Source of the DNA: Macrostomum lignano | Taxonomy: Eukaryota | DNA length: 64,000 nt | Assembly (NCBI GenBank): GCA_002269645.1 | Contig: NIVC01003516.1 | Coordinates: forward strand, 1 to 64,000 | Reading direction: 5' to 3' | In this document: piece after piece, positions 6,636-53,500 of the stretch | How the letters are laid out: each line of letters opens with the position of its first letter | Numbering within the stretch: position 1 is the first letter of the stretch | The notes under the pieces: generated by a model | Told to the model about the DNA's origin: nothing | The model's input: only the letters and a program-made list of their open reading frames with translations | Database searches by the model: none | Made by a program: the position numbers and the translations under genes

Positions 6636-6831
6636 AGGCTTGCGGGTATTAGGATTCAAAAACAGAAGACACTATCGAACTTCGAGTAGGGAGGCTATTG
6701 TAAAACGTTAAGAGCACTGCATTCGAATTCCGAGAGCAGTCAGAGACCTTTAGGTGGGAAAATTAAATCAACGATATTACTTGAGTAGTTGAGTAAGTTT
6801 TTTCTAGTTTGGGCCAGGTGCGAATGCTAAT

Positions 6832-18299: not shown

Positions 18300-18471
18300 C
18301 CACAAACACCCTCAATTACCCCAGCTAATGCATATTACAGATGGGTGAACTGAAGCGATGCAGAGTTAAGTGGTAAGTGTCTTGCTGAAGGACACAAATT
18401 GTTCCAGTAGGGATCGGGAATCGAACCCCCGACCTTTAAGTCGTGAGTCTAACGCTCTAACCACTAGGCTA
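18300..18471 (-). mobile_element. tRNA-derived SINE
   Basis: Minus strand reads TAGCCTAGTGGTTAGAGCG (A box), GGTTCGATTCCC (B box), then the GTGTCCTTCAGCAAGACACTT body motif typical of metazoan tRNA-SINEs. The 3' end is uncertain. Confidence 0.7.
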
Positions 18472-20911: not shown

Positions 20912-22252
20912 TCAATGCTTCTCCGTCTGAATCGCTATGGGCGGCAGCGTTTTCGTGCGATTCAACATTCTGTGAGGCGCCTGCGAGAGGGAAGCAGAAT
21001 TTGCTTCAGTTGACAGAGGTCGAGCACCAGGATCGGGTTTCTTGGAGGGTTGCTCGCTTGCTCGTGGTCTATAAGTGAGTGGCTGACTCCCTCTGACACT
21101 CTGCTTGGACAGATCCATGGTCTCCGTGTACGTGCCTCTCGAACCCGGGGGTGATAGAGACGTTAAAATTGGTTGAATCACCGGAGGGTTTTTCCGATCA
21201 TTACCGATCTGGTTGAAGTGGTGTCCGAGTAACGCTCGTCGACCGCCCCCAGAGGGAGCGGCTCCCCTCCGCGGTGTAAACGCGGCGCTAAGTAGGGGCT
21301 GCGACGAATCGTCTGCTGCTCCTTGCTGCTGCCGCCGCCGCCGCCGCTGCGGCGATAGTACATAGTACTCGATTGCGTCTGCACTTGGTCCATCAGTGGC
21401 CACATGCGGTGCCTGAAATGCGGTTTGAGCTCCAAGCTTGCCGGCATTCCGCAGACGACTCCTTGCTGTCCTTCCTGTTTGTCGCTGGTCTTGCGTTAAT
21501 CTTTCGATTCGCTGACGCTCCCTTTCAAACTCGACCTGCTGCGTATCGAGCTGCCTTTGATGCCTCTCCATTTGAAGTGCACCCGCGCGAGGTGCACCCT
21601 CTAGTGGTTTGAGCAGACGGGAAATTCTTTTACTTAAGTCAGTAGCCAGTTTTGCAGCAAACGCCTCGCCATCAGCGCACAGCTCCAGGCTCTCCACTGT
21701 CGGCTCTACCGGAGCGGCTCTCAGTTCCAGTCCGGCAGTGACGCCCTGTTCCGCTGACCGCTTCAGCTGCTCCATGTCGGCTGCCCACTGCGCCGCAGCT
21801 TCGTGATGTCGCTTCAATGCACCGATTGACGCGTCAAGTCGCTCCCGCTGAGTTGCTACCGCCTGCTGCATTTTCGACTCGATGACCGACAGGCAGCGAT
21901 CGATTTGGTCCGACTTCTCCATGGCTGCTCGGGCCGCATCCTGCGACTGCTGTCGGGTTCTCTGCAGCTCCTCGATGCTCGGCAGCTGGTTGGAGATCTC
22001 TCTGGCTCTAATAACTCGATTAGCCTCGATCAGCCTGACCATGGACAGATTCTGCGGCAGCTGCTCCGGCCGCGTCTGAGTCACATGTCGGCAGGTCGGG
22101 CATCGAAGAACTCCTTGGTTCTCCAGCAGTCGTTGAAGGCATTCGAGGCAAAATGTGTGCTGGCAGTTTAGCGCTGTTGGCCTTCCCTGCTCCTCGCAAC
22201 AGATAGGGCAGCTGACGTCAGACTCAGCGATGATCGAGTTTGGTTCGGTCAT
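20912..22252 (-). CDS. RING-HC finger plus coiled-coil protein (TRIM-like E3 ligase, no B-box seen)
   Basis: CPICC...ALNCQHTFCLECL...CPTC followed by helical Q/E/R-rich segments; 446-aa open frame. The C-terminal extent is uncertain. Confidence 0.75.
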   Translation of the reverse strand: MTEPNSIIAESDVSCPICCEEQGRPTALNCQHTFCLECLQRLLENQGVLRCPTCRHVTQTRPEQLPQNLSMVRLIEANRVIRAREISNQLPSIEELQRTRQQSQDAARAAMEKSDQIDRCLSVIESKMQQAVATQRERLDASIGALKRHHEAAAQWAADMEQLKRSAEQGVTAGLELRAAPVEPTVESLELCADGEAFAAKLATDLSKRISRLLKPLEGAPRAGALQMERHQRQLDTQQVEFERERQRIERLTQDQRQTGRTARSRLRNAGKLGAQTAFQAPHVATDGPSADAIEYYVLSPQRRRRRQQQGAADDSSQPLLSAAFTPRRGAAPSGGGRRALLGHHFNQIGNDRKNPPVIQPILTSLSPPGSRGTYTETMDLSKQSVRGSQPLTYRPRASEQPSKKPDPGARPLSTEANSASLSQAPHRMLNRTKTLPPIAIQTEKH

Positions 22253-32544: not shown

Positions 32545-35500
32545 ATGGGCCGGAACAGAAAAAGTGATAGTAAATCTGCGCGCAGCGAAGAGCCAGGTGA
32601 TAAGGAGCCAGGCAAGTCACGTGCATCATCATAGTTTGAGCGTTTGCTGGCTTCGTACTTCTTATTGTACCATGACCTTTGTGCCCGCTGGGCACTTATT
32701 CTTGTCTTTTAATGCCATAGACTACATTTAAGCCCGCTTGCAGGAGTCAAACTTACTTTAATTCAAATTAGCGGGCAGTTAATGACATTTAACGCCCGAT
32801 TGTCTATTTCAAACTTACTCTAATGCAAATTAGCGGGCAGTTAATGACATTAACTGCCCGCTAATTTTGTTCCACTTTGTCAAGGACACAAATGTCTATG
32901 GCACAATAATAGTAATACCCATGCTTTGCGGGCGTTAATGGGAAAATCAGAGGGCGCCGTATGGGTATTAATGTACTATTCTTTCAGTCTTTGGTCAGTC
33001 GCCTCAGACTTAATATTTTGCCATTGCTCTTGAAATTTGTCATTTCTTCATTCAAACTTTTCAGAGCCCTACCAGCCCACCGGCAATTTTCAAACGGATT
33101 TTGCCGAACTGTGCAAAGAGGCCGAGATCTGCCGGCCGCCAGCGGTGGTGCTGAGAGCCAAGCGGCCCACCTCGCCAGATAAGGTGAGTCATCAAGCCGC
33201 GCAAACTTGTTAGGAAATGTAGGAAATGTACTGGTTTTGTCAGCCTAACTGAGAATAAAGCCATCCAAAGTGAGAATCCTGCCTACGCTGACTGCGAAGG
33301 GCCTGGCTGCGTGCAGCCTTAGTCTATGGGCCATAGACAATAAAGGACAAGCAAAGTGATAAAAAGCCATCCAATGTGAGAATCCTGCCTAACGGCGCCC
33401 TCTGATTTTCCCATTAACGCCCTTAAAGCATGGGTATTAATGTACTATTAAAAGTTTCTATTCAGACAATCCAGCGCTCTAACAGCTTTATAGGCTTAGC
33501 GCTTGAAGTCAATACAGCGCAGCCTGTCAATAAAATACGGCTTTGAACTTGATTTTGTACCCAAAATTCTGTAAAAAACTGGGCTAATCAAATCCCCCCG
33601 ACTGCAATGCCTTAGGCTTAGACTTTTAGCTACTCTAGAGGGTCCCTTGGTCAGTTGGATAAACAGCTCCCGCAGTCTTATCTAGTTTCTGATCGAATGG
33701 CAGTATTTTTATGACACTGGCTGCTGTCGAAGAGAATGACTGTCAACTTGATTGGCTTAATAACAATGCTTCTCATTGATGCGTTTAAGAATGTGTAGAA
33801 CGGTAAAAGACGAGCCAATCGTACAAATCATTCAGATCGAGCACGCCCAGGTGCCAGCCGGCAAGAAGGGCAAGGAGGACAAGAAGGCCGCCCAGCAGCA
33901 GCAGCAGATGGTCGAGCCTGAGGAGGAGTCGCCTGAAGAGAAAGGTAAGAAGTGGCGCAGTGCGATGATCTGCTCAGAGCCTTTTGTTTAATCTTTTAGC
34001 AAAACTTTAAAGCTATTTAAGCATAGGACTGCTGGACTTTTCTTAAAACATATCCATAGTCAGCTGGTGTCACCTGTTGAAGGTGCCGACGGTGTCTCGA
34101 TGACGACTGAATGCTTCAGAGACTAGCTGAGGATGTCCTGCAATTAAGGTTTGCTCTTTTGAGGTTTGATCAGAAAAACTTGAGAAATTCGTAATAGGGT
34201 GTCTGAAGCACCTGGTGCCACGTGTTGAAGGTTCACAAGCTGCGCCAAGCTGAAGGCCAGTGACCAAGAAAGTCAGAGCTGCTGCAGACACATGTGTTCG
34301 ATGTGCTGATGAACTTTGTAGGCTTGGCAAGGCGGCACTGAGGCGCAGTGCTGACTGGCGCCCAGGGGGGTGTATTGAATGCACTTGCGCTTTTGGGAAA
34401 AATCCTCGACGGCGACTTGATTCTGATTTTCAGAAGGTGCACAACAAAAATTAAGTCCATGTTCTTAAGTTGCTCCGTTACTCCTTCTCCATGGTAGTTC
34501 TACTGTCAATACGATGAGTTGTAGTCGGAGGTAAAACGGTCGCGTTAATTTACCTTGGAAATCTGTTGAAGCAAGTATCAGTTCATTTCTTACCCGCGAG
34601 TTCGCCACCTGGTTCCCAGACTCTGTCTTGTCCGATGAAGAGCGGAGACTCGCACTTGACGACTGGGGTAAAAGCTATTACATGTACATCGCATTTTGGC
34701 GATTGAGACCTTGATTAGTTTTTTAAACCCAAACGTTTCCTAAACTGTTGGTAGAGCTTGTGAAAGTTAAAACTGACAATTTTACTAAAACAACCGCGTG
34801 TAATATTCATGGACAACTGGAGTACAAGGACGCTACTATGTTTATTGAGAGCATCCTTATACTTTAGCTTCCATGGTCATGAGCGATTCAATTAACAAAA
34901 ATCGTGTATTACTCGTATAGTTTCATCTGCAAACCCCTTCATTATTCGTACTAACCAAGTTTCCTAGAATCGCAAGTCTCCTGTGGTAAAATATGATTGA
35001 AAATCAGGATTTATTTAGCAATAATTAACTATGGTATTTGCCATTAACTTACTCCCTGTGCAGCCGTGATGGAGCTACTCGGATTCAAGCCGAAGACATT
35101 TTCCGTGAAAAGCCACCTGGAGCTGATGAAGCCGTGCATTCAGGTTGAGATGGACCACCCGGACAGGCAGGACAGCGTCACGGAGGTCTTCATCAAAGAT
35201 TGGAAACTGCAGGCGCCGATGCTGCTGACGCTGGGCCGCTGCTTTGAGAAGCTTCAGAAGCTGCACAGCATAAAGTAAGCACGCGGATCAAATTTGTTCA
35301 TGCGGATACCCAGTGCCAATGACTACTAAGGACCCCCAGATCCGTTGATTTTGGGAGGGGGGTGGGTGTCAACCCACCCCGCCTCTCATTGGCTGGCGCT
35401 CGGCGCGCGCGCCGCAGGCGCGTGGCGCCAAGCGCCATCCAGGCGCGCCAATCAGGCGCGCCAATCAGGCGCCCATGCCGCAGGCGGCCCTACCGACATG

Positions 35501-38500
35501 TACACCCTCCCCAGCCGCAGGCAACCCTCCCCAGCCGCAGGCGACCCTACCGACATGTATGCCGCAGGCGCACCCTCCCGATATGTACCCCGATATGCCC
35601 ACCCTCCCGATATGTACCCCGATATGTTTGCCCTCCCTCCAGAGCAGCAGGCGCCCATGCCGCAGGCGCCCCACTCTCTCAAGCCGCAGGCACCCCGAGT
35701 GTACACTCTCCCGAGCCGCAGGCACCCGAGTGTACACTCTCCCATGCCGCAGGCACCCCGAGTGTACACTCTCCTCAGTACACTCTCCCGATATGTAGTC
35801 AATGATATTAGGCTAGTGAAAACTACTTATAGTAGGTGAAATTGAGTATATTTACATAAAAAGTATAAAAAACATATTGGTAGGTGTGAATAATGATGCA
35901 TAATGCATCATATTAAAATGTACATATTGGAGCATAATAGGAATATGAGCAGCAAAAAACACACAACGTAGGCGCATATTATTGATATATTGACAGAAAA
36001 GCAGGTGAAATAGACAAAATAATACAAAGCGGGTACTGTAAGCGCTAATAAAACATAGGTGGAAATACACACAAGTATAATAATACAGGAAAATTACATA
36101 GCATATAATGTAGGCAGATTTTAAACATTACATTTTGCATATTAACCCGCAGGCACAAATTTCAATGCATAGGCTAAAACACACACACTGGAAGTTAAGT
36201 ATAATACAACATATGCATGCAAAATTAAGCATATAGGTGCAAAGTAAAATATCCGGCTTCCTAGTAAAGAGACACGCCCCCCGCATTCCTCCCCAGGGCC
36301 GGGGGATCCCAATGTACAGTGCGGGCGGAGTAACATAGAGAAATTCAATTCCTCCCCAGGGCCGGGGGGATCCTTAGCGGAGTACAGTGCGGGCAGAGAG
36401 GAGTAACAGAGACCGCCCCAATGTACAGTGGAGGTAGCAGACCGCATACAAAGAGAATTCTCCCCAGGGGGGCTTCCAAATAGGTTTTATTATCTCAAGT
36501 GCCGCGCAGACAGGGGAATCTCAGTCAGGGGAGACTGTTTAAGGCCTTATCACTCCCGAAAGCCATACGGGCGGCTGCCAGACCCATACACTCGCTTAGT
36601 CATGACGCGCTGGAATGTCTTATCCATCTCCAGGGTCCGAATTGTACAGCTGGCCTTGTCGCGCCTGAACTGTGCCTGGGGCAGCCGTACAGTCCCGCCG
36701 TGGCGCAGAATCTCCTGCAGCTCCGCCTCCCGCTCGGCAATCTCGGGCGTGACTCGGATGCCCTTGCACTTGAGCACCGAGTACAGCGACCCGTCGGGCT
36801 TCTCCACCACATAGCGATAGAGCTTGGGGCCTCCCGTGGTGAACTGTACCATGCGGCAGCCGGCAGGTACCTCGTCAGTCCACTGCCCCAAACTCGAACC
36901 GCTGGGAGGCTCGTACTGGCCTGGAGAGCACCGGTATACGACCCTGGGGAGGAGGAGAATAAAGTGTTTAGGGGAGCGAAGCAGACAGACAGACAGTGTG
37001 AAAAACTTACGAATCAGTATCGGCGTAAATCACGCGGGTTCCTAGACCCTCAAGAGCCTCGTACAAGCGCAGACGGGCATGGGAGGTGGTGAAAACTCCA
37101 ATAGGTACATTGGCGTACTTGAATGCCCGCTCGCCAGCAACACCAATTCGGGGCTTGTATTCAAGCATCATGAAGCACTCTCCTATTGGCTCGCACGACT
37201 TGACTTTGATGGACGGGTCTGTCAGGCGCTGCAGCCACGCCTCGTAACTGTCCACAATCTCTGTGGAGGTCAAGTCATCCCGCTGGCAGAATTTGCCCAG
37301 AGCCTGCAGGGAAAAAAGATTTAGTATTACTACTGTAAGTAGAAAAACACGGTCCACCACTGTACAAACCCAGACTTACGAGTTTAGAAAAATCTTGGCC
37401 ACAAAGCGCAGGCCAGGATTTTCTTCGACCTTTTCCAGCCGGACGCCTTCGCGCTCGAAAAAGCTCGCCATGTAGGCAGTCTTTGCGTCCTCAGTCATCC
37501 CCGGCGAACCGCTAGACTCGGCCTTGAGCTTCAAAAAGGTGTTTACATAATCTGCAAACAGCCCGGTCCGAGTCTCGGTCCAATAGGCCAGGGCATGAAC
37601 TGACTGCAGCTTGTATCCCAACTGCAGGGCCTTGTGGAGCTCTGGGGTCGCCCATGTACCGCGGAGCATTCTCTCAGCGTCAGTGTGTGTACACTCGCTG
37701 CTGCACTGGGTCTCCATGCAGACGCGGCAGAGGCCGAAAACCAGCTTCTTGCTAATCTTGGCGGGCAGTAGCGGGATGTGGAGATTGGTCGGCGGCAGAA
37801 TCGACACCTCGGCGATACCAAAATACCGGGCCAGCTGCAGCTCATCCAGTAGATGAGGCTCGGGGTGGTGAACCGGGTGCCCGACAGGGTACTTGTCAAA
37901 CTTGTTGACAGTCGGGTAGAGCGACACCTAGAGAAAAGTAGTAGGCTAAACTCAAACGCATGTTAACTGTGTGTGTGTGTGTGTGTGTGCGCGCGCATGT
38001 GTGTGTGTGTGTGTGTGTGTAAGAGAAATTTTGAAAAAACTTACCGCATCCCGATAGCGCAGCTCCACAGTCTCGGTGGCCTCGGCGTGCGGGACAAAAG
38101 CCTCGGTGCGGCCGCCAAACAGGGCTTCCTCCAGGCGAATAGGCTGCTGGACTGGCGCTCCCTCGCCCTGATAGTCGTGCTCCCACAGAACACGTACATT
38201 GTAGGCAGTGGAGAGCAGCCGAGTGAAGCGCTCAGTCTCCTCATAAATCGCCCGCATTGGCTGGTTCTTGAGCGGGTGCAGCACGTCGCCGTTGGGGAAG
38301 CACTTGGGACAGCCATGGTAGAAACAGCCATGAAACTGCAGCACAGTCCTACTCTCCGGTCGAAACCGTCCACCTTACGGCCCATGGCGAAAGCCTCGCC
38401 GCCAGAGTCGGCTGTCCGCAACCGGCCGCCAAACTCGGTTGCATTCAAATGTGCAAGCCAGCACCGCGCCTTGTGCGACTGCACATCTGATCGGCGGGAA

Positions 38501-41500
38501 ATCACCCCAAGAGTGTTGGGCTCCATAAACTTGGTGGTGAATACAGCCATGGCCAAGCCCGCAATGGTGTTGGATTGGACAAATGCGTCCAGTCCGCAAA
38601 TGTCCTTAATCAGGCGGGTGTACTTTAGACAGCCTTCCCGCAAAATTAGCGTGTCCTGCAGGCAATAGTCCAGGTACTCCTTATTGAAATTAAACACTCG
38701 GCCCTCCTGCTTGGCCAGCCAGTCAGCGATGGAGTCGTGCTGCTTATTCTTCTTCCCGCCGTACATATCAATTGAGCAGTAGGGACCTACGTAGCCCCAG
38801 TTTTGTGGCTGATTGAACACGTGCGGGAAATCTCCTTTGGTCAGTTGGGTGCCCAAACCAAGCGCCTTTGGGAATTGCGCCAGACCAATAGGGATAAAGT
38901 TGAGGCTGTCCTTGAACGTGATCTTGTCGCACTTCATGTACATTAGGCGGCTGTTCTGGAAGATCACCTGCGGCTTCTTCTTGGCCAGTCCGTTGAGTAG
39001 GGCGCCGAGCAGGAGGAATGCGTCATACGCAGAGCCATTGTGCGCAATTGCAATTGCCCCCTGCTTGAACACACTAGTCAGCCAGCAGTAAAAGGCATCG
39101 ATAGAGTGCGGCCCGACAGATACAAACTCTCGCATCCCACAGGCACAGTCATTTTGCGAGACACAGCTCGTAAAATCGCGCGCCAAATCGCGTCCCGCAA
39201 TGCAATTGGCTGAGCTGTGCAACCCCCCGCACGCGCCGCAGCGGGGCCTGGGGAAGAGTTTGGGACACGCCTCGCAGGAGGTGGCAGCCGTAACCAAGTG
39301 TACCCGGTGCTGCTTGCCAGAGTCCACGTACGTCTCGAAATCATAGTAAACATACGGGGCGCTAGACTCTTTGGCTTTGGGCGGGGTGACAAAGCACTCG
39401 TGGGTGGCAGTTTCGTCGTACTGCTTGCAGACTGGACACTTGGCGTAACCACACTGATGCTCGGGGGCGTGGCCTACTTTCAGTTCTTCTAGATAGCCAC
39501 ACGTGCCGCAAACGTGGACTGAATCACAGCGAGATCTGCCCGCCTTATTCTTGCGCTTGTGATTCTCTAGGCACTGAGCATTATAGCAATTTAGACCGCA
39601 ATCCTGGCATCTTACATATGCACGGTTGACCTTGCAGTTTGAGCCCGGAGTCTTGCAGGTGCTACAGGCGTCGGCGCACTTGTGCTTGGCGTTGCCGCAA
39701 TCGTAGGCCATCTCGCACTTGGCGCAGTAGTGGTGGCTGCCGAAAAACGCTGACAGCTTGGTGACCACATTGAAGTGCTGCTCAACCAGGTGCAGGTGCA
39801 GAATCTCAGTGCCAGGCAGGTTGAATATGCACGTGTTGGCCTCCTCTGCCCTGTACACTCGTACACCAAAATCGTGGCCTGGATACAGACGGTTCAGGGC
39901 CCGGACCGCCTCGGGCAGAACATCCACCCCAAAAGGACCGGCCTGCGAGACGATTTGATGAGTCTGTGTGGAGGCAAAATATTTATTTTAGTAATCCTTA
40001 TCGTAAAATTTCTTATCAGAAGATATATCTTTTAGTATTCCATGATACTGAGTAAAAATTATATCTTTTAGTATTCCATGATAGTGAAATTCTTATCAGG
40101 AAAATCAGTTCACAACTCACGGTGTAGAGTCCAGCCTCAATTTGCAGCTCAGTTGCCAGCTTAGTCTGCTTGGGCGAATTGGCTCTGATTGTACGCCACA
40201 CCTGCTCGGTGATGCGCTTGGCCACAAATTGCAGGTAGGCGCAGGCCACGACCAGAGCTCGCAGCAGGCATCTCTTGTCCGTGTTGGTGATGCGGACATA
40301 GTGCTTGGAGAAGGCATGCCGCTCCTCTAGATGTTTGTTCTCGAGAGCACATCCACCTCGAGGCACCCAGGCCTTTAGCAGACGGATAGAAAAGTTGCTC
40401 GACAGTACGCTTGCGTCTGACTGCACAATCTTGTCAATGTGCTTAAACAACAACTCTGCTGTCATGCGGGCTGCACGCACCGGAGGAGTGTGGGCTGCTT
40501 TGAGCATATTATCACTCTCGAATTTAGCCGCCATAAAGTCATCACCAGCCAAATCCTGCTTGAAAACTTCGAGCATGCTGGCAAATGTCTCGCGTAAATC
40601 TTCGGTGTCATCTAGCTTTACCACATACTCAACACCCTTTGCCCTAAACTTGGGCAGGTCGCGCTGATTATCCAGCCGGGCCGTAAAACCTGTAGGGGGA
40701 ATGAAGGGGGAGTGTGAGTCAGCCCGGATCTGCCTGGGGAATAGGGGGGTTGGATAACTCACCCGGTCCGGTAACAGATTCAGGTTGGGCAGGCGGGACA
40801 AACGCGTCTGAAAAAACACAAGGAGATAAAAAACCAGAAGAATCTGTCAATTCGTGGCACCCCAGGATCAGACTCCAACCGACTCATTGTTCACGCTCCC
40901 CCCTTGCGCTCAGGCCCTCTCACCGACACGCTCTGCAATTTTTTTAACCCCAGCCCGCAGCTGTTATCCAGCCCGGCCCGGCTCATTGTTAGCGCTACCT
41001 CTCGCACGCATGCCCCCCTGCCGAGACGAATCTGCAATTTTTTAACCCTAGCCGCATCCGGCCTGGCTCATTGTTTGCGCTACCCCTCCCGCACAAGCCC
41101 TGCTGCTGAAACGCTCTGCAATTTTTTTAACCCCAGCCGCATCCCGCCTGGCTCTTTGTTTGCGCTACCCCTCGCACGCATGCCCTGCTGCTGAAACGCT
41201 CTGCAATTTTTTTAACCCCAGCCCGCATCCTGCCTGGTTCTTTGTTTTCGCCCCCTCTCTACTCAAACTCGCATGCCCTGTCGCAGCACTCTGAATTTCC
41301 GCATGCTCCTGCAGCTGTCAGAGCGCCCACCACTTTTTATCTGGCCTGGCTCTTTGTTTGCGCTCACGCATAACCCCTCGCACGCAAGCCCTCCTGTTGA
41401 AATGCTCTGCAATTTTTTTAACCCTAGCCGCATCCGGCCTGCTCTTTGTTTGCGCCCCCTCCCTACTCAAACTCGTAAGCTCCCTGTCGCAGCACTCTGA

Positions 41501-44500
41501 ATTCTATAGCCCGCATGCGCCTGAAGCTGTCACAGCGGAAAACCCCTCAACTCTTTGTTAGCCCCCGCCTGTCTAGTCTGCTCTTATCAACTCTCTATCG
41601 CGCCCCTCTTGCTCCTGCCCCTGCCAATTCATAGAAGCTCCCTGCTGCAGCAACTCAAAACCCGTCTAGACTGATATACAACCGGATAGAAATTAATTAA
41701 AACTTACCATAAAGACGTTGCCTCTTGTCAGCCAGGAAAGTGGTCGATGCTGCGCTGCGTTTAGCCATTTTGCATACAGAGAGAAGGATTATCTCTCTAC
41801 CCCTGTTCTAGGGTTCCGAATATATACTAAAAACCTGCTTAGCTCGTCTATTATTGGCCAAATCACCAAAAAACCAACCAGAATCACTCAAAATCACCCC
41901 CAAAATCACACCCTCCCACCCTCCATCTGGGGTATATAAAGCGCTGCGCGGCTGTCGGAGAGCTCTCTGCTGCTGCTGCTAATCATGTCTTCTTCTATCG
42001 CTCTATACGAAAACTTTGTGGCGCGGAAGCCCACATTTGAAACGGAGCATGACTTAATTGAAATCCGTCGGCTCTACACCGACGAAGCTGGAGTGTGGAA
42101 GGACGGCTTCCCAGCAATCTATTTAAGCGAGGTCGAGTGGAAGAAGCTCGAAGCTGCACGCCCTGACCTGGAGGCTGCGGCACGTCTTCACGTGGACAAG
42201 AGAGTCGTGTTGGGCAGCTTCAAGGCAGCAGAAGCTTCACAGGGGAGGATTCGTTTGCGGCGCAATTGGCTTAATCGGGATCCAAAGTTCAATTGGCGCT
42301 ACACAATTGAATTCACGCCGGAACTGTGGCGCCGGATGTTTGCCGCCCGTTTGGGCAAGCTCTTCAAACCCAAGGCCCCGCCGCCAGCCAAACGAGCCAG
42401 GACCGAGACCTCTCCGGTAGCCAGGACTGAGGAGGAGGAAGAAAATCTCCAGGTTGCGGGTCTCAAACCCTACCAATCCCCGCCCTGGGAAAATCTGTTT
42501 GACGAGAGTCAGCGCTGGTAGTTCCCTATTGGCTCGCGCCACCCCGCGGGGCTTCCTATATAACTAATCTATCCAGCCTCTAGAGAGCCAAACCCTAATC
42601 CTAGCCCTGATACTATAGTCTGCTGATTCCAACATGTCCCGCCGCCGAGCTCTATCCACCCTCTGGGATAAAAACCGCCCATCTGAAGAATTAGCCTTCC
42701 TCGACGGTGAAATACCCGAACATATAATCCCCATAGGCATAGAAAACGGCGGACTTGACTATCCTGAAAATTGGGGTGCTGATATAGCCTTATCTTGGGC
42801 TTTGTGGGCTATTACCTACGATAGCGACCCGGGGTCTGAGATTTTCGACATCCCGTGGGGTAATAGCTTCGATAGCGACACCGGGTCTGAGATTTTCGAC
42901 CTCCCACCGCTGACTATCGGAGGGGGTGTGAACGCCGCCGCTGCCGACTCTGGTGCCTCTGCCGATGCCGACTCTGCCACCTCTGCCGCCGATGCCGACT
43001 CTGCCGCTGCCGACCCTGGTGTCTCAGCCTCTGCCGCCCCTGCCACCTCTGCCGACTCTGGTGTCTCTGCCTCTGCCACCTCTGCCGCCGATGCCGACTC
43101 TGCCGCTGCCGACTCTGGTGTCTCTGCCTCTGCCGCCTCCAGCCAAGCCTCGATATCATCAGCCACCACGATCCTTCTCTTTGGTGATGAGGAAATGAAT
43201 ATGGCCGAGGAGATCGCCATGGTCCGCGATCGCTTTCGGCGTATTGTGGCCTCCTTTTTTCACCGTGATATCGAGTGGTTGAGGTCTCGCCACCCCGACG
43301 GCCTGCCTCCCCAAGACACCTTTGTCGAGGCCTTTAATCGGGTTCTCGATACTTTGGTGTCGAGGGGGGGCTGACCTACGGGAGGTGTTGGAGGCAGAGA
43401 CACTACATCAAGATTGGTTGATGGGGCGCAATTCGCATGCCTCCGACACTGAGGCATATCTGGCCGGTCCGGGAGCGCGCCCTACTGAGTGGGATGCACC
43501 TATGGTAAGATATTACACTGTATACACAATTCGTCTTATCATATACAAAGCATATATTCTTTCTACATTAATTGTTTTAATTTCCCCATTGCAGTCGGCC
43601 GACTACTGATTCGAGACCCTTGAGGAGGAGGCGGCATGAAACAACACTGAGGAGCGGCTGGAGGTTGACTGGGGTTTGCGGTTTTTTCTCCCTGTACGTG
43701 GTTTAGGGAAACCCCACAGTATACACTGAGTATATTGAGGGGGGGGGGTTAAAAGACTAATTCAGGGAGAAAATTGTCTCCCTTACAGTCTCCCCTGACC
43801 GAGATTCCCCTGTCTGCGCCGCACTTGGGATAATAAAACCTATTTGGAAGCTCCCCTGGGGAGAATTCTCTTTGTATGCGGTCTGCTACCTCCACTGTAC
43901 ATTGGGGCGGTCTCTGTTACTCCTCTCTGCCTGCACTGTACTCCGCTAAGGATCCCCCGGCCCTGGGGAGGAATTGAATTTCTCTATGTTACCCCGCCCG
44001 CACTGTACATTGGGATCCCCCGGCCCTGGCTCTGGGGGCGTGTCTCGAATATCCTGGGCTGGATATTTGACTTTGCACCTACATTATATGCTTAATTTTG
44101 CATGCATATGTTGTATTATACTTAACTTCCAGTGTGTGTATTTTATCCTATGCATTGAAATTTGTGCCTGCGGGTTAACATGCAAAATGTAATGTTTAAA
44201 ATCTGCCTACATTATATGCTATGTAATTTTCCTGTATTATTATACTTGTGTGTATTTCCACCTATGTTTTATTAGCGCTTACAGTACCCGCTTTGTATTA
44301 TTTTGTCTATTTCACCTGCTTTTCTGTCAATATATCAATAATATGCGCCTACGTTGTGTGTTTTTTGCTGCTCATATTCCTATTATGCTCCAATATGTAC
44401 ATTTTAATATGATGCATTATGCATCATTATTCACACCTACCAATATGTTTTTTATACTTTTTATGTAAATATACTCAATTTCACCTACTATAAGTAGTTT

Positions 44501-47500
44501 TCACTAGCCTAATATCATTGACTACATATCGGGAGAGTGTACTGAGGAGAGTGTACACTCAGGGTGCCTGCGGCATGGGAGAGTGTACACTCGGGTGCCT
44601 GCGGCTCGGGAGAGTGTACACTCGGGGTGCCTGCGGCTTGAGAGAGTGGGGCGCCTGCGGCATGGGCGCCTGCTGCTCTGGAGGGAGGGCAAACATATCG
44701 GGGTACATATCGGGAGGGTGGGCATATCGGGGTACATATCGGGAGGGTGCGCCTGCGGCATACATGTCGGTAGGGTCGCCTGCGGCTGGGGAGGGTTGCC
44801 TGCGGCTGGGGAGGGTGTACATGTCGGTAGGGCCGCCTGCGGCTGGCGCCTGGTCGGCGCTCAGCGCCTGGACGGCGCTTGGCGGGCCGCCTGCGGCTGG
44901 CGCCCGGTGGGCGCTCGGCGCCTGGACGGCGCTTGGCGCCACGCGCCGACCAATGAGAGGTGAGGAGGGTTGACACCCACCCCACCTCCAAAAACGCCCG
45001 GATCTGCCGGCCCTTAGTAGTCCAATGCAAAGCCAAAATGCGTATTTAGCTGAGGGTGTCTGGGGTCCTCACAGGTTTTGAGAAAGATGCATGTACTTCC
45101 CATGTACATCAGCAAGGAAGCTTCCAGGCGCGTCGCCACGGGGGGGCAGGGGGAGATGTCCCCCCAGTAAAAGCTCTGGGGGGGACATGCCAATGCTTTG
45201 TCCCCCCCCACCCCACCTTGTGAGTCTTGGTAATCAATAACTTTTCTTCAGGGCGCCAAAATATAGCGCCATTGCTGCCAAAATGAGTGCATGTGGTGCT
45301 AAAATGAGTGCCTGCAGCGCTAAAATGAGTGCCTGGAGCGCTAAAATGAGTGCCTGGAGCGCTAAAATGAGTGCCTGCAGCGCTAAAATGAGTGCCTGGA
45401 GCGCTAAAATGAGTGCCTGCAGCGCTAAAATGAGTGCCTGGAGCGCTAAAATGAGTGCCTGCAGCGCTAAAATGAGTGCCTGGAGCGCTAAAATGAGTGC
45501 CTGTGGCGCTAAAATGAGTGCCTGCGGCGCCAAAATGAGTGCCTGGAGCGCTAAAATGAGTGCCTGCGGCGCTAAAATGAGTGCCTGCGGCGCTAAAATG
45601 AGTGCCCGTGGCGCCAAAATGAGTGCCTGCGGCGCTAAAATGAGTGCCTGCAGCGCTAAAATCAGTGCCTGGAGCGCTAAAATGAGTGCCTGCGGCGCCA
45701 AAATGAGTGCCTGGAGCGCTAAAATGAGTGCCTGCGGCGCTAAAATGAGTGCCTGCGGCGCCAAAATGAGTGCCTGGAGCGCTAAAATGAGTGCCTGCGG
45801 CGCTAAAATGAGTGCCTGCGGCGCTAAAATGAGTGCCCGTGGCGCCAAAATGAGTGCCTGCGGCGCTAAAATGAGTGCCTGCGGCGCCAAAATGAGTGCC
45901 TGCGAAGCTAAAATGAGTGCTTGCGGCGCTAAAATGAGTGCCTGCAGCGCTAAAATGAGTGCCTGGAGCGCTAAAATGAGTGCCTGCAGCGCTAAAATGA
46001 GTGCCTGGAGCGCTAAAATGAGTGCCTGTGGCGCTAAAATGAGTGCCTGCGGCGCCAAAATGAGTGCCTGGAGCGCTAAAATGAGTGCCTGCAGCGCTAA
46101 AATGAGTGCCTGGAGCGCTAAAATGAGTGCCCGTGGCGCCAAAATGAGTGCCTGCGGCGCTAAAATGAGTGCCTGCGGCGCCAAAATGAGTGCCTGCGAA
46201 GCTAAAATGAGTGCTTGCGGCGCTAAAATGAGTGCCTGCAGCGCTAAAATGAGTGCCTGGAGCGCTAAAATGAGTGCCTGGAGCGCTAAAATGAGTGCCT
46301 GCAGCGCTAAAATGAGTGCCTGGAGCGCTAAAATGAGTGCCTGCAGCGCTAAAATGAGTGCCTGGAGCGCTAAAATGAGTGCCTGCAGCGCTAAAATGAG
46401 TGCCTGGAGCGCTAAAATGAGTGCCTGTGGCGCTAAAATGAGTGCCTGCGGCGCCAAAATGAGTGCCTGGAGCGCTAAAATGAGTGCCTGCAGCGCTAAA
46501 ATGAGTGCCTGCGGCGCTAAAATGAGTGCCCGTGGCGCCAAAATGAGTGCCTGCGGCGCTAAAATGAGTGCCTGCAGCGCTAAAATCAGTGCCTGGAGCG
46601 CTAAAATGAGTGCCTGTGGCGCTAAAATGAGTGCCTGTGGCGCTAAAATGAGTGCCTGCAGCGCTAAAATGAGTGCCTGGAGCGCTAAAATGAGTGCCCG
46701 TGGCGCCAAAATGAGTGCCTGCGGCGCTAAAATGAGTGCCTGCGGCGCCAAAATGAGTGCCTGCGAAGCTAAAATGAGTGCTTGCGGCGCTAAAATGAGT
46801 GCCTGCAGCGCTAAAATGAGTGCCTGGAGCGCTAAAATGAGTGCCTGCAGCGCTAAAATGAGTGCCTGGAGCGCTAAAATGAGTGCCTGTGGCGCTAAAA
46901 TGAGTGCCTGCGGCGCCAAAATGAGTGCCTGGAGCGCTAAAATGAGTGCCTGCAGCGCTAAAATGAGTGCCTGGAGCGCTAAAATGAGTGCCCGTGGCGC
47001 CAAAATGAGTGCCTGCGGCGCTAAAATGAGTGCCTGCGGCGCCAAAATGAGTGCCTGCGAAGCTAAAATGAGTGCTTGCGGCGCTAAAATGAGTGCCTGC
47101 GGCGCCAAAATGAGTGCCTGCGAAGCTAAAATGAGTGCCAAAATTTAGTCATGTACATGGTGAATTCGTGGCTTTGTCCCCCCCCCCACCATAAAATCCA
47201 TGGAGACGCCCCTGCTTTAATCGACCTGTGAAGGCAACTTACTTTCCAAGCTCCCTTGACCATCATCAGCCTTTGGCGAGTGGCGGCCGATGCCAGCATT
47301 GTTGACACCCTGGCTAAGCTATTGGGACGCTTGCCAGCCCTGCGCTCTCTGTCTCTGGAGTCAAACGGACCCGTGGCAGATGAAGAAGTCTACGCGGAGC
47401 TGATTCGAGTTGAGAGCAAGTAAGTGCCTGCCAGTTTCCCAAGCAACATACAAGTCTCTACTTTCTCTGTAAGACAGTGTTAACCAACCGCCAATATTCC

Positions 47501-50500
47501 AACCGCCACAAAGCCTCACAAAGCTGCGCCTGCGCTTCAACCAACTTAGCGACAAGGCCGTCTCAGCGATGGCCATCCAGCTGGACGGGCTGCGCGAGAC
47601 GCCGTCGAAGCTGGTGTCGCTCGACCTGTCCTCGAACTGCATCGGCGACGCTGGGGTGGATTCGCTGGTTAAGGTACTCAGACAGATCCTTTCCTGACAT
47701 TCCAGATCCTTTCCTGACATTCCAGATCCTTTCCTGACATTCCAGATCCTTTCCTGACATTCCAGATCCTTTCCTGACATTCCTGATCCTTTCCTGACAT
47801 TCCAGATCCTTTCCTGACATTCCAGATCCTTTCCTGACATTCCAGATCCTTTCCCGATATGCCAGATCCTTTCCCGATATGCCAGATCCTTTCCCAATAT
47901 GCCAGATCCTTTCCCGATATGCCAGATCCTTTCCTGACATTCCAGATCCTTTCCTGACATTCCAGATCCTTTCCTGACATTCCAGATCCTTTCCTGACAT
48001 TCCAGATCCTTTCCCGATATGCCAGATCCTTCCCGATATGCCAGATCCTTTCCCAATATGCCAGATCCTTTCCCAATATGCCAGATCCTTTCCCGATATG
48101 TCAGATCCTTTCCCGATATGCCAGATGCTTTCCCGCTATGCCAGATGCTTTCCCGATATGCCAGATCCTTTCCCAATATGCCAGATCCTTTCCGGGTATG
48201 CCAGATCCTTTCCCAATATGCCAGATCCTTTCCGGATATGCCAGATCCTTTCCCGATATGCCAGATCCTTTCCCAATATGCCAGATCCTTTCCGGATATG
48301 CCAGATCCTTTCCCGATATGCCAGATCCTTTCCTGACATTCCAGATCCTTTCCTGACATTCCAGATCCTTTCCCGATATGCCAGATCCTTTCACAATATG
48401 CCAGATCCTTTCCCAATATGCCAGATCCTTTCCCGATATGCCAGATCCTTTCCGGATATGCCAGATCCTTCCCGATATGCCAGATCCTTTCTGATATGCC
48501 AGATCCTTTCCCAATATGCCAGATGCTTTCCCGATATGCCAGATCCTTCCCGATATGCCAGATCCTTTCCGGATATGCCAGATCCTTTCCCGATATGCCA
48601 GATCCTTTCCCGATGTGTCAGATCCTTTTTCGGATATGCCAGATCCTTTCACAATATGCCAGATCCTTTCCCAATATGCCAGATCCTTTCCCGATATGCC
48701 AGATCCTTTCTGATATGCCAGATCCTTTCCCAATATGCCAGATGCTTTCCCGATATGCCAGATCCTTCCCGATATGCCAACTTTTCTTCAATATCGCTGC
48801 ATTCAGTCTCAAGCGGACTGAACTGCCTCCCGTCTCTTTCTTACCCTGAATCTTCCAATCATGCTAAAGCTTAAAGGTGCAAATACTGAAACACCTGTTC
48901 ACTCGCTCCAGTCTCTGCGCACCAACCGGACCCTGCTGCACCTGTCGCTGAGCAACAACCGCCTGACGGACCGGTCGGCGATCGCCTTGGCCCAGGTGTG
49001 TTCCCGGTTCTTCCTCACCCACGAGGAAACTGTGCAGCGCCGCCGCCTGATGTCCGTTGACTTCCGCTCCGGCACCAGCGTGAGTTCAGCTGTTAATGAA
49101 TTGGCGCCAAATAGCGGCGCTGGTAACCATGGAAACAACGCTGGTTTAACTGCATCTACAGCTACGCATAACACAAACCATAGTAATAGCCATAGCCACA
49201 ACCACACTGGCGGCACTGCCTCTTCTCATCTGCGTGTTGTAAGTTCACCGACCTCCCCAGGCTTCTAACAAGTGATTTGTCCGAAACCCCGAAAAACTAG
49301 ATAAACAGACCAACATTAAAATAATTTAGTGGCCATTGCTAAACCTGTGATTGCTGTTTTGGAACTCCCGTTGCTATGGTTTGAAGACCCGTTGCTATGG
49401 TTTGAACACCCGTTGCTATGGTTTGAACACCCGTTGCTATGGTTTGAATACCCGTTGCTATGGTTTGAACACCCGTTGCTATGGTTTGGAGACCCGTTGC
49501 TATGGTTTGAACACCCGTTGCTATGGTTTGAAATCTCGTTGCTATGATTCAAAATCTCGTTGCTATGGTTTGAACACACGTTGCTATGGTTTTAAATCTC
49601 GTTGCTACGGTTTGAAGACCCGTTGCTATGGTTTGAATACCCGTTGCTATGGTTTGAACACCCGTTGCTATGGTTTGGAGACCCGTTGCTATGGTTTGAA
49701 CACCCGTTGCTATGGTTTGAAATCTCGTTGCTATGATTCAAAATCTCGTTGCTATGGTTTGAACACACGTTGCTATGGTTTGAAATCTCGTTGCTATGGT
49801 TTGAACACACGTTGCTATGGTTTGAAATCTCGTTGCTACGGTTTGAAGACCCGTTGCTATGGTTTGAACAACCGTTGCTATGATTTGAACACTCCTTGCT
49901 ATGGTTTGAACACCCGTTGCTATGGTTTGAACACCCGTTGCTATGGTTTGGAGACCCGTTGCTATGGTTTGAACACCGTTGCTATGGTTTGAAAACCCGC
50001 TGCTATGGTTTGAAGACCCGTTGATATGGTTTGAACACCCGTTGCTATGGTTTGAAGACCCGTTGATATGCTTTGAACACCCGTTGCTATGGTTTGAACA
50101 CCCGTTGCTATGGTTTGAACACCCGTTGCTATGGCTTAGAGACCCGTTGCTATGGTTTGAAAACCCGCTGCTATGGTTTGAACACACGTTGCTATGGTTT
50201 GAAATCTCGTTGCTACGGTTTGAAGACCCGTTGCTATGGTTTGAATACCCGTTGCTATGGTTTGAACACCCGTTGCTATGGTTTGGAGACCCGTTGCTAT
50301 GGTTTGAACACCCGTTGCTATGGTTTGAAATCTCGTTGCTATGATTCAAAATCTCGTTGCTATGGTTTGAACACACGTTGCTATGGTTTGAAATCTCGTT
50401 GCTATGGTTTGAACACACGTTGCTATGGTTTGAAATCTCGTTGCTACGGTTTGAAGACCCGTTGCTATGGTTTGAACAACTGTTGCTATGATTTGAACAC

Positions 50501-53500
50501 TCCTTGCTATGGTTTGAACACCCGTTGCTATGGTTTGAATACCCGTTGCTATGGTTTGAACACCCGTTGCTATGGTTTGAACACCCGTTGCTATGGTTTG
50601 GAGACCCGTTGCTATGGTTTGAACACCGTTGCTATGGTTTGAACACCGTTGCTATGGTTTGAAAACCCGCTGCTATGGTTTGAAGACCCGTTGATATGGT
50701 TTGAACACCCGTTGCTATGGTTTGAAGACCCGTTGATATGCTTTGAACACCCGTTGCTATGGTTTGAACACCCGTTGCTATGGTTTGAACACCCGTTGCT
50801 ATGGCTTAGAGACCCGTTGCTATGGTTTGAAAACCCGCTGCTATGGTTTGAACACCCGTTGCTATGATTCGAAATCTCGTTGCTATGGTTTGAAGACCCG
50901 TTGCTATGGTTTGAAGACCCGTTGCTATGGTTTGAAGACCCGTTGCTATGGTTTGAAGACCCGTTGCTATGGTTTGAAGACCCGTTGCTATGGTTTGAAG
51001 ACCCGTTGCTATGGTTTAAACACCCGGTGCTATAGTTCCATCGCTATCTCTGAAACACATTTGGTTTGAGGAAGGTTCTTTAGCATGTGGCCATTGAATT
51101 TGAGCAAAGAAACAGGAGCACTACTCAAGCCTTGTCGGTTGTGTTTCGGGCAAAACTCACTTTTTATTGCGCATTTTTAAAATAGTTCCGGACGCACCGC
51201 CGCCTGCGTGGACCAGTTTTTTCAAGAGTAACATTTCAAAACAAAAGTAAAAAAATATTCTAATTTAACGCTGATATTTCTGAAGTTGCCGTCACAGAAT
51301 ATTATTAATAACTTGAATGAATTTTGATTTTCATTAACAAAACTGGTTCACACAGATGCGCCTCTCCGTAACTTAATTAAAACCAACTAGCCTAGCAACC
51401 AACCCATTTCTAACAAAATGCCTTTTTCTGCATTGCTTGCTGATTCTCGACAAGCAGGCGGCCACAACCGTAAGTGAAACATGGGGATTGAATTCGTAAA
51501 AAATAATCGTATTTCAGTTTGAGTAATTATCTTTCCTGGCTTCTTTGTGAGCACAACTGACTTGAATAAAATATGTTTTTCTGCACATCGGGTTCTATAC
51601 TGTATGTCTTGTATCCGTAAGTTTTTTCGGGCAACTTTTGCACTAATAGTTCATTTTATGAGCACAAATCTGCTTTGTAATTCATTCTTCCCTAGAAAAT
51701 ATTCAGTCTAAATGTAATATAATTTTTTTTTCATTTTAAACTGTACTAACTGATAACAGTCGACTAATCAGAAACCGCAGCCAATCAGATGCCACAACCA
51801 ATCAAATGTCTTAGCCAATTAGACACTGCAAACAATCAAATGTCTCAGCCAATCAGACACCACAACCAATCGAATGTCTCAGCCAATCAGGCACCGCAAC
51901 CAATCGAATGTCTCAGCCAATCAGACACCACAACCAATCGAATGTCTCAGCCAATCAGACACCACAACCAATCAAATCTCTCAGCCAATCAGACACCGCA
52001 AACAAAAATTAGCCAGTTCAGGTTAACGAGCAATTGTAAAACCACTGTGTTAAGATCAGACTAAGCAATAGCCACTTAAATGCTTTTAGAGTAATACTGT
52101 TTTCATCCAGCCTTAACTCAAATCTGATCATAAATTTTTCCTTTCTCTTTCTTTTCTTCCTCCACAACTTTTAGCCAGACAGGGAGAGCCGTCAGAGTCG
52201 CCCAGATTCGTCTCACGCAACGGTACTCAAGATTTGCTTTGCTTGCCCATCTCTATGCATTCTGTGTGTGAGCTGACACCAACGGTTATTCGCTCTGCAA
52301 CAATAATAACTGATGAATGTGTGAAATATTTGCATTAATTTTTATTAATTTCTACTTATATTGAAATTCAAAAGCTCGCATGCAGTGCAGTGTTCTCTAA
52401 TTAAGCCAAAGCAACATCAGCAAATCGCTCGCAATGTGACTCCAAACTGTCCATGTATTTTTGAAATAGTTTTTTGAATCGGTGATGTTGATAAAGCACT
52501 TGTTTATCCCTCGGTAATTCTAAAGATTAGCAAGGTTATCCCTCGATAATTCTAAAGATTAGCAAGATTATCCCTCGATAATCCTAAAGATAAGTAAGAT
52601 TATCCCTCGATAATCCTAAAGATAAGTAAGATTAGCCCTCGATAATCCTAAAGATAAGTAAGATTAGCCCTCGATAATCCTAAAGATTAGCAAGATTAGC
52701 CCTCGATAATCCTAAAGATAAGTAAGATTATCCCTCGATAATCCTAAAGATAAGTAAGATTAGCCCTCGATAATCCTAAAGATTAGCAAGATTATCCCTC
52801 GATAATCCTAAAGATAAGCAAGATTAGCCCTCGGTAATTTTGCCACACAAGCATTAAGACAATTTTCGTACAGTAACCTACTAGAGCACACAACCACTAT
52901 TTAATATTGTCTTGCCTGATTAACAACATTTTTAAGTGTACTTGCCCTTTTTGCTGTGACTTTGTGCTCCCTTTTGTTTAAATGATTAAAATAAGATGTT
53001 TACTGTTTGATTTTTTTAAGCCAAGGTTAAAACACGCGATATTTTGGACATTTTATAAAATTCGCGTCATATTGAGTAGTCTGCATTTGTTACTATCAGT
53101 AGTAGTCTTGAGAAACGCACATTAAAAAAAGCTGAATAATAAAAAAACGCCTCCCCGCAGCCGCCGCCCAGCCGCAAGGGTGCGGACAGGCCGGGCAGCG
53201 TTCGCAGCATCGACAAAGATAAGGATAAGAAGTCTGCCGCAGCTGCCGCCAAGACTGCCGGCAAGGGGAAAAAGGTGAGCCTTGAGCTTTTAGGGGAGAA
53301 ATAGGAGTCAAGTTGGTAATTTGGTACAAATTTTGGGATATGCAGGTGGGTGGGAGATGCAGGTACAAGAGAGGATGAAGTGGTAAGAATAGGGGTAATA
53401 AGAAACATGCTATAGAGAGGGTGTTTTGAAAGGGGAGAGTGTGGTGAGAGACAGGGAGAGTGTGGTGAGAGACGGAGAGGATGGTGAGAGACAGGGAGAG

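Follow-up and report, generated by a model that had tools for sequence, protein, structure and literature searches.

The element at positions 35322–45021 of the window, the 64,000-nucleotide stretch of Macrostomum lignano DNA analysed here, is probably an integrated member of a multi-copy Macrostomum family of reduced Polinton/Maverick derivatives that carries the replication module only. [quoted passage not shown] Among the features that define a Polinton/Maverick sensu stricto, the protein-primed polymerase (pPolB), the long TIRs and a 5–6-bp TSD are present; the integrase and the morphogenesis module are absent. The gene content is that of a replication module alone, in agreement with an earlier note on this DNA.

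Boundaries of the element

The two copies of CCAATG (35316–35321 and 45022–45027) directly adjoin the inverted termini ACTACTAAGG and CCTTAGTAGT. The 23-nt terminal pattern occurs at just these two sites, against a chance expectation of 0, and the chance of a 6-mer match at fixed positions is 1/4096. The long TIRs and the exact duplication described in the earlier note were thus both found again (35316–45027). The left TIR (1217 bp, 35322–36538, plus strand), beginning ACTACTAAGG, and the right TIR (1237 bp, 43785–45021, minus strand) are 92.8% identical over 1250 aligned columns, with the differences in patches. The outer ~155 bp show 80–84% identity, with indels; the ~745 bp inward of these are 99.6% identical, followed by a ~100-bp patch of 84% and an innermost ~220 bp of 97–98% identity. 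Reading the element as a member of a reduced family leaves this patchiness without an explanation. The outer ~500 bp of the left TIR are rich in G+C and contain CCAAT-type motifs and 12–32-bp tandem sub-repeats; an A+T-rich middle follows, and the inner edge carries AATAAA in the outward direction. A candidate NFI-type site in the TIR was dropped, the motifs being CCAAT-like only. An Rfam search of the element gave no match, and a PHROGs search found nothing either.

It is barely credible that the inverted ends are an assembly artefact from a mis-join or a foldback read. Long-read assemblies can produce inverted duplications, and the two frameshifts in the polymerase gene (see below) are both one-base length differences, but the substitutions and indels that separate the arms follow a structured pattern, and the arms stop at exactly matching termini flanked by the 6-bp duplication. 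The flanks outside the element are ordinary unique or satellite sequence. The duplication is of the type typical of rve-integrase insertion; Polinton integrases are known to leave just such a mark, an exact repeat of 6 bp next to complete termini.

The polymerase and its domains

The pPolB gene is located on the minus strand (36550–40819), with its stop codon 11 nt from the TIR. Its identity, as first proposed, is confirmed by Pfam PF03175 matches on two blocks (E=1e-14 and 7e-13). The gene contains four GT-AG introns (157, 117, 76 and 67 nt), and their removal restores polymerase motifs A and C exactly, which indicates long residence in the genome. The 117-nt intron splits motif A and contains a (TG)26 microsatellite (37968–38020). 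No ATG was identified in the first coding block. The 267-codon ORF at 40016–40819 was rejected as a separate gene; it is the N-terminal exon of pPolB. The coding sequence is broken by two one-base frameshifts, where the window copy of the gene is either dead or mis-assembled; given these, the copy of the element looks inactive unless they are assembly errors.

The four spliceosomal introns, the many gene models and the isolation of the clade, which has no close relatives outside Macrostomum, would suit a domesticated or merely resident gene, that is, a polymerase with many paralogues retained by the host in a long-dead, long-immobile element. We regard this as quite improbable. The 99.6% identical TIR core and the exact TSD argue for a fairly recent insertion or conversion, and the frameshifts here, together with models elsewhere that are truncated and heterogeneous, are typical of a repeat family in decay and not of a conserved host gene.

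The N-terminal domain of pPolB (39772–40819, minus strand), a putative terminal-protein or OTU-like region, has an invariant Cys in the motif DKRCLLRAL (40253–40279) and an invariant His (39772–39798) in an 18-sequence alignment, and is conserved in 129 non-Macrostomum relatives. Its matches to otubain in the PDB are weak (E~0.9). A vOTU domain, an OTU-fold cysteine protease with catalytic Cys and His, has been reported N-terminal to the exonuclease, as domain D2, in eukaryotic pPolBs (PMC11161782).

Between the exonuclease and polymerase parts lies an insert (38123–38502, minus strand) assigned as a VSR-type (very-short-patch-repair) nuclease domain. Searched against the PDB as a profile, it has E. 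coli Vsr as its sole match (E=0.003); as a single sequence the segment gave no match. The AF2 model of the homologous segment of protein P0001 (pLDDT 84) has 1cw0_A and 1vsr as best Foldseek matches (E=3e-3, prob 1.00, TM 0.54). Profile and predicted structure together confirm the assignment. Of the 143 top non-Macrostomum relatives, 69 have the VSR motif (72 sequences including three Macrostomum models), and the insert is intact in just 3 of 43 Macrostomum models. By its insert, the window polymerase matches the VSR-bearing pPolB2 group of Polintons of marine invertebrates (marine nematodes, molluscs) (PMC10748475).

As the nuclease domain is the sole DNA-cutting function encoded in the element and no helper is seen, insertion could be imagined to proceed independently of an integrase, for example through staggered nicks made by the VSR domain of the polymerase itself, or through host repair. 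This is very unlikely, since the precise duplication at complete termini carries the Polinton integrase signature and so few Macrostomum models keep the insert intact. The same insert is also found in the polymerases of integrase-bearing relatives (PMC10748475; L001, which has both the VSR motif and an integrase), so it is no integrase substitute.

Small genes, central repeats and missing genes

ORF178 (41985–42521, plus strand) is an intact frame of 178 codons, transcribed divergently from pPolB, with a PC4-like segment (residues 22–67), the basic sequence PPPAKRAR and a tail of acidic character. It has four homologues, in M. lignano, and its frame is the only one of the six with a positive codon-usage score. 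Alignment to the PC4 profile with hhalign (P=4-7e-5, score 31–32, prob 63–71%) exceeds all 287 controls: 200 shuffles reached 21.6 at most, and 87 window ORFs 16.3. With an HMM of the PC4/Sub1 ssDNA-binding domain (PF02229), ORF178 is the best of all window ORFs (E=0.026), and human PC4 is its top PDB match (E=0.53). Of the PC4 fold, a dimer with a four-stranded sheet plus helix, the match covers only the helix and roughly the last two strands. There is no Pfam match at E<=0.1; the AF2 model, built on a 5-sequence alignment, is too poor to use (pLDDT 44). The PC4-like call of the earlier note finds support, though below the Pfam threshold, and we describe ORF178 as a putative single-stranded DNA (ssDNA)-binding protein with significant but modest similarity to PC4. 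Comparison of the small ORFs with the genes of relatives L001–L005 by phmmer and hhalign found no match. The ORFs upstream of pPolB in L003–L005 encode acidic or zinc-knuckle proteins that are not PC4-like.

Downstream lies an acidic, low-complexity coding region of uncertain status (42634–43680, plus strand) formed by ORF246 (42634–43374) and a further block. One M. lignano model, P0040, joins the ORF246 region to ORF178; relative to it, the window has one frame change and two in-frame stops in the ORF246 region. As a plus-strand protein ORF246, first described as an acidic orphan, has no homologue at E<=0.001; it overlies tandem repeats and its status as a gene is doubtful.

The genes do not fill almost the whole interior, as had been thought. 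About 1.1 kb at the centre (40820–41984) is non-coding and consists of ~85-bp direct repeats, with about seven direct copies of an 85–100-bp unit at 40872–41566 (plus strand). This region may serve the two divergent genes as a shared promoter region. An 'inside-out' origin, with the central repeats as a fused TIR junction, was rejected: the repeats are all direct and have no inverted symmetry.

No Pfam match to an integrase, capsid, ATPase or protease was found in the tested interior ORFs of at least 73 aa, and none to an rve integrase in any interior ORF. A double jelly-roll capsid protein, a penton, an A32-type ATPase and an adenain-like protease likewise gave no Pfam match in the element. 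The earlier note likewise saw no integrase or virion genes. ATPase and protease are detectable in relatives by the same Pfam tool. Capsid proteins of the relatives have no Pfam model, and for these the absence rests on lack of coding space: the interior is taken up by pPolB, the central repeats (1.1 kb) and the region of ORF178 and ORF246, and the rest is too small for an integrase. Integrase and capsid domains are also absent from 41 Macrostomum pPolB models.

Relatives, family layout and origin

A profile search with pPolB returned 9,495 relatives, the nearest outside Macrostomum being 27–32% identical; a word-indexed homology search, faced with identities of ~30%, picked up a single non-Macrostomum polymerase, and a scan of IMG/VR with the polymerase alignment found no relatives. 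The pPolB clade of Macrostomum is isolated. All inspected nearest relatives lie in integrase-bearing Polinton-type genomes, from animals or marine metagenomes, and an rve integrase is present in 7/7 of those with at least 13 kb of context (L001, the Nymphon striatum locus L002, and L004–L008). A32-type ATPase matches occur in L001, L004 (below the Pfam cut-off) and L005 (faint), and L004 also has an adenain-like protease. True PC4 proteins are encoded by L001 and L002. Because its nearest pPolBs belong to integrase-bearing Polinton-type genomes, two of them with a genuine PC4 gene, the element is read as a reduced Polinton, and the 'linear-plasmid-like' reading of the earlier note is set aside. 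TIRs were sought in contigs L001, L003, L004 and L005, whose ends are incomplete, and none were found.

The window element shares with the VSR-bearing pPolB2 Polintons/Mavericks (adintovirus-like; PMC10748475; L001, L002, L004–L008) the order of the polymerase domains, including the N-terminal Cys/His domain and the VSR insert, as well as a target duplication of 6 bp and long TIRs; L001 and L002 have an accessory PC4-domain gene, of which the PC4-like ORF178 may be the counterpart. It differs in the absence of rve integrase, packaging ATPase, protease and capsid genes, and in size (9.7 kb, against at least 13–16 kb). Its polymerase has four spliceosomal introns, whereas the metagenomic relatives are intronless, and is only ~30% identical to those of the relatives. 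In the window element the genes diverge from the centre and face outward; in the relatives they face inward, with the PC4 gene and pPolB at opposite ends in L001 and L002.

Aligned blocks of the 38 M. lignano pPolB models are 44–100% identical to the window, and the models split into two subfamilies. The ORF246 region, the ORF178 region and pPolB are chained in the order of the window by at least seven diverged gene models of M. lignano (P0004, 7, 23, 24, 25, 27 and 35), with 42–95% identity in the ORF178 and ORF246 regions. These models read the minus strand of the two regions and may be prediction artefacts. P0001, ORF178 and the 628-aa block were each looked up as exact proteins, and no record turned up. 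The TIR-to-TIR structure, length and TSD were read from the window copy alone. As the same three segments recur in the same order in these diverged models, the family as a whole probably has the reduced layout.

The insertion here, or in the ancestor of a duplicated locus, could instead have been a full-length Polinton whose integrase and morphogenesis genes disappeared afterwards through internal rearrangement; the short form would then be no family that transposes. The relatives with context are all full-length. P0004, the only other locus with a visible flank, shares its flank with the window and is thus this locus again, or a duplicate of it, and no separate insertion; the patchy TIR identity could reflect a rearrangement that re-created one arm. 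We nevertheless consider such a one-off deletion unlikely, though a serious competitor. The segment order is kept in models diverged down to 42–67% identity in the small-ORF regions, the pPolB stop lies close to an intact TIR, and there are no remnants of other genes. Moreover, a simple internal deletion of an L001-like layout would give convergent, not divergent, genes. The earlier view that this is not a randomly deleted copy is upheld by the segment order and by the position of the stop.

For a reduced Polinton family, we propose that an ancestor carried integrase and morphogenesis genes that have since been lost. The remaining module comprises the protein-primed polymerase, with its putative N-terminal priming/OTU-like domain, exonuclease, VSR nuclease insert and polymerase domain, and the divergent small PC4-like protein, presumably ssDNA-binding. 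The 1.2-kb TIRs with their ACTACT terminal reiteration would be suited to jump-back protein priming. Either the polymerase of the element itself or one from an intact sibling would produce a free linear copy, and an rve-type integrase supplied in trans would have made the 6-bp duplication. Insertion most likely needed the integrase of another element; this helper is hypothetical, since no integrase- or capsid-bearing Polinton has been shown in Macrostomum. We found no paper linking Macrostomum with Polintons or Mavericks. More tentatively, Macrostomum may host long-lived, diversified 'replicon-only' Polinton satellites, which have their own pPolB, a PC4-like ssDNA-binding partner and acquired introns, and spread via the integrase, perhaps also the capsids, of other elements.

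Non-autonomous polintons of Pieris butterflies lack polB and are still mobile (bioRxiv 10.1101/2025.02.07.637071). Like the window element they are TIR-bounded, have a partial Polinton gene set and rely on functions in trans, but they keep integrase and capsid genes and lose polB, while the window element keeps polB and loses the rest. Linear plasmids that replicate by protein priming, known from yeast cytoplasm and from the mitochondria of fungi and plants (e.g. PMC10583447), also combine TIRs and a pPolB with no integrase or capsid; they are extrachromosomal linear DNA with a 5'-linked terminal protein and usually have an RNA polymerase. The window element, unlike these, lies in a nuclear chromosome and has a target duplication, introns and Polinton polymerase relatives. 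The replication module of adenovirus consists of pTP/Pol, the DNA-binding protein and reiterated CAT termini. By analogy, the polymerase of the element would do the priming, an accessory protein would bind ssDNA, and the trinucleotide reiteration at the very ends (ACTACT) would allow jump-back; here the putative priming domain is fused to the polymerase, and the accessory protein resembles PC4 instead of the adenoviral DBP.

What defines Polintons is that they pair an integrase with a polymerase able to prime itself, and several groups of viruses are viewed as their descendants. The PC4-type gene here and in two relatives points to a little-noticed replication accessory of the VSR-bearing Polinton lineage; we found no paper that describes it. 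If a family with only the replication half and integrase-type insertion is real, the two halves of Polintons can be uncoupled in either direction, and replicon-only satellites would be the mirror image of the polB-less Polinton derivatives of insects. The family would also add flatworms as hosts of the VSR-bearing polymerase lineage, and would provide a naturally occurring intermediate that links Polintons, which integrate, to protein-primed replicons without an integrase, for example linear plasmids and the donor of the bidnavirus polymerase.

Boundaries and interior of the element

The element spans 35322-45021 (9,700 bp exactly), and a copy of the target-site duplication CCAATG (35316-35321 and 45022-45027) directly abuts each end. 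Both ends read ACTACTAAGG in the inward direction, and the 23-nt terminal pattern is found at two sites in the window, which are the element ends (chance expectation none). The terminal inverted repeats (TIRs; 35322-36538 and 43785-45021) are 92.8% identical over 1250 aligned columns. The earlier note had described a 9.7-kb element with TIRs of about 1.2 kb and an exact 6-bp CCAATG duplication, and the ends, the TIRs and the abutting duplication are all present in the sequence. Between the left and right TIRs, identity is 80-84% over the outermost ~155 bp, where indels occur and transversions are numerous; the next ~745 bp are 99.6% identical, followed by a patch of ~100 bp at 84% and the inner ~220 bp at 97-98%. 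AATAAA is located in the outward sense at the TIR inner edge. The outer left TIR carries GCGCCAATCAGGC, with a CCAAT-box-like motif, 3.2 times in tandem (35432-35472); in the right TIR, its place is taken by a diverged 18-bp repeat (44845-44947), and related CTCATTG(G/T) motifs recur within the central ~85-bp repeats. No further copies or fragments of the element were found elsewhere in the 64-kb window.

None of the 18 interior ORFs matches integrase, ATPase, protease or capsid families, and the same families gave no match among the Macrostomum polymerase models (0/41). The claimed lack of integrase and virion genes is supported, with no small ORF matching an integrase or capsid family. The interior space is accounted for. 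The stop codon of the polymerase gene pPolB lies 11 nt from the left TIR, and the right-hand coding region stops ~100 bp short of the right TIR; genes do reach the margins, as had been proposed, but the centre (40820-41984) is made up of about seven direct ~85-bp repeats. The definition of a Polinton in PMC5499653 requires an integrase; this excludes the element from the Polintons sensu stricto and makes it a reduced derivative.

The polymerase gene and its relatives

pPolB is located on the minus strand (36550-40819). Its N-terminal block is a 267-codon ORF (40016-40819) that aligns with the N-termini of M. lignano polymerases and is joined to the next coding block by a 157-nt GT-AG intron. 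Removal of three other GT-AG introns (117, 76 and 67 nt) restores conserved polymerase motifs exactly, for example ...YRDAVSLYPTV... and ...YADTDSVVYRCSPG...; a (TG)26 microsatellite lies within the 117-nt intron. The exon blocks contain no stop codons. Two one-base frame changes, one in the VSR insert and one in the polymerase domain, have no intron to explain them, and the gene as assembled is broken twice by frameshifts. As both are one-base length differences, they may be long-read assembly errors. No ATG could be assigned to the first block, and the 5' end of the gene is not settled by any database model either.

A very-short-patch-repair (VSR)-type nuclease domain (38123-38502, minus strand) is inserted between the exonuclease and polymerase parts. 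A 27-sequence profile of this segment had E. coli Vsr as its sole match in the PDB (E=0.003). The homologous segment of the M. lignano polymerase model P0001 gave a confident predicted model (pLDDT 84), whose two top structural matches are Vsr (E=3e-3, probability 1.00, TM 0.54). Of the top 143 relatives from outside Macrostomum, 69 have the VSR motif, and one relative carries the annotation very-short-patch repair endonuclease. The segment is included in three of 43 M. lignano polymerase models (P0001, P0002 and P0042) and skipped in the rest; either many copies carry damage in this segment or gene predictors splice it out. VSR-bearing pPolB2 polymerases are known from marine nematode and mollusc Polintons (PMC10748475), with which the insert in pPolB agrees. 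The N-terminal domain of pPolB is common to 129 relatives, with one Cys and one His invariant. These residues would be expected if it is the vOTU-like domain that PMC11161782 describes for polymerases of this type, but its sequence match to otubains is weak (E~0.9), and the domain may or may not be of that kind.

In UniRef, the longest pPolB block matched 35 clusters, all from Macrostomum lignano (59-98% identity), and only one other protein (28% identity). A profile search over 1.8 billion representatives added three Macrostomum models, and the resulting 38 divide, at an identity cut-off of 70%, into two subfamilies of 33 and five members. The closest non-Macrostomum polymerases are 27-32% identical. 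An rve integrase lies near the polymerase in all seven relatives with at least 13 kb of readable context (L001, L002 and L004-L008). L002 is from the sea spider Nymphon striatum and also has a PC4 ORF; the others are metagenomic, L006 and L007 being Tara marine metagenomes. L001 additionally encodes an A32/IVa2-type ATPase and a WW+PC4 protein, L004 an adenain-like protease and a weak A32-type ATPase match, and L005 a faint A32-type ATPase match; no other Polinton genes were identified in L006, L007 or L008. Named hosts among other polymerase relatives include sea cucumber, pearl oyster, Nematostella and firefly. The earlier note had proposed a linear-plasmid-like or satellite element; the first of these readings is not supported, as the integrase in every relative with context indicates descent of pPolB from bona fide Polintons, not linear plasmids. 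As the L001 polymerase has both the VSR motif and a neighbouring integrase, the VSR nuclease is no substitute for an integrase.

The small ORFs and the gene layout

ORF178, a 178-codon ORF on the plus strand (41985-42521), is intact, with four homologues in M. lignano (62-73% identity). Codon usage favours its frame alone among the six. Pfam made no call on ORF178, the predicted structure is unusable (pLDDT 44), and human PC4 is its top hit in a sequence search of the PDB (E=0.53). With hhalign, residues 22-67 align to a PC4 profile, a small one built from tool-derived sequences, with P=4-7e-5 and a score of 31-32; control maxima were 21.6 (200 shuffles) and 16.3 (87 other window ORFs). ORF178 also ranks first when a PC4 HMM is run over all window ORFs (E=0.026). 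The WW+PC4 protein of L001 matches human PC4 (E=7e-9), and an unannotated minus-strand ORF at ~22.8 kb in L002 matches the PC4 profile (E=8e-12); in both loci, the PC4 gene is situated past the integrase and is encoded on the other strand from the polymerase. The PC4-like gene proposed earlier thus scores above controls but lacks a Pfam call; that ORF178 is PC4-like, and probably binds single-stranded DNA, is likely but unproven.

The acidic orphan of the earlier note exists as an ORF (ORF246, 42634-43374, plus strand) but is less convincing as a gene. It lies on 15-51-bp tandem repeats, no homologues were found for it as a plus-strand protein, and outside the C-terminal part codon usage is ambiguous. 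The M. lignano model P0040 connects the ends of ORF178 and ORF246 to each other and to one further block; compared with this model, the window has one frame change and two in-frame stops. ORF246 may represent a second set of ORF178 exons that has decayed, or no gene.

In seven M. lignano models (P0004, P0007, P0023, P0024, P0025, P0027 and P0035), segments from the ORF246 region, from the ORF178 region and from the polymerase are chained in window order. As their identities range from 42% to 95%, this segment order is common to diverged copies, which supports the earlier argument against a random deletion. That argument is weakened on two counts. Over the small-ORF regions, the models read the minus strand, which in the window is interrupted there by stops; these parts may be artefacts of the gene predictor or exons of a 5' UTR. 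P0004 matches the right flank (47201-47642, minus strand; 84-98% identity) with its first 104 residues and the element with the remainder; it therefore stems from this locus or a duplicate of it and does not count as an independent insertion. The insertion is thus present with this flank in the UniProt M. lignano assembly, whether as the window locus itself, as a haplotype of it or as a paralogue from genome duplication. In L001 and L002, the PC4 gene and the polymerase are at opposite ends and point inward, whereas in the element they point outward, so that a simple internal deletion of the L001/L002 layout does not account for the short form. In the metagenomic relatives L003-L005, the polymerase is preceded by a divergent small ORF of acidic or zinc-knuckle type, resembling the layout of the element.

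Genomic setting and proposed propagation

The rest of the window contains ordinary animal genes, RGS7-like (DEP, DHEX, RGS; 27027-29324, minus), RING-finger (20912-22252, minus), C2H2 zinc-finger (16295-17395, plus) and SCA7-domain (6832-8010, minus). The window is nuclear chromosomal DNA from M. lignano or a species very close to it. A protein-like 70-codon ORF (35066-35278) terminates in a donor-like GTAAGC, with ~45 bp between it and the insertion to its right, and has the top codon-usage score among the regions scored; the element may lie within an intron of a host gene. A 21-bp minisatellite (88.6 copies, 45280-47139) starts 250 bp right of the element. As it is open in both strands, its 621- and 635-codon ORFs were rejected as repeat artefacts, and their coiled-coil Pfam matches are spurious. 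A 20-bp array of 55 copies (47683-48779) has the 9-mer CCCGATATG in common with the TIR sub-repeats (35577-35795 and 44525-44743). This 9-mer occurs 19 times in the array, five times per TIR and at no other place in the 64 kb, against 0.27 expected; the array may have originated from a TIR of some related element. At 1-1000, 6001-7000, 18001-20000 and 53001-55000, strand composition is extremely skewed (GC skew up to +0.65 or -0.45), and these stretches are probably further satellite arrays.

The element is a replication-module-only insertion of Polinton ancestry with an integrase-type footprint. Mobile Polinton derivatives without polB have been reported in butterflies (bioRxiv 10.1101/2025.02.07.637071); the element, which retains polB, is their converse. 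A literature search found no description of this converse form, of Macrostomum Polintons or of Polinton PC4 genes. As both genes run outward into the TIRs with their outward AATAAA, the TIRs may supply the 3' ends of both. We suggest that protein priming at the TIR ends would generate a free linear copy, and that the ACTACT reiteration there would allow jump-back. Adenoviral CATCAT ends use such a reiteration for jump-back. The PC4-like protein would coat the displaced single strands, and the rve integrase of another element would insert the copy, creating the 6-bp duplication.
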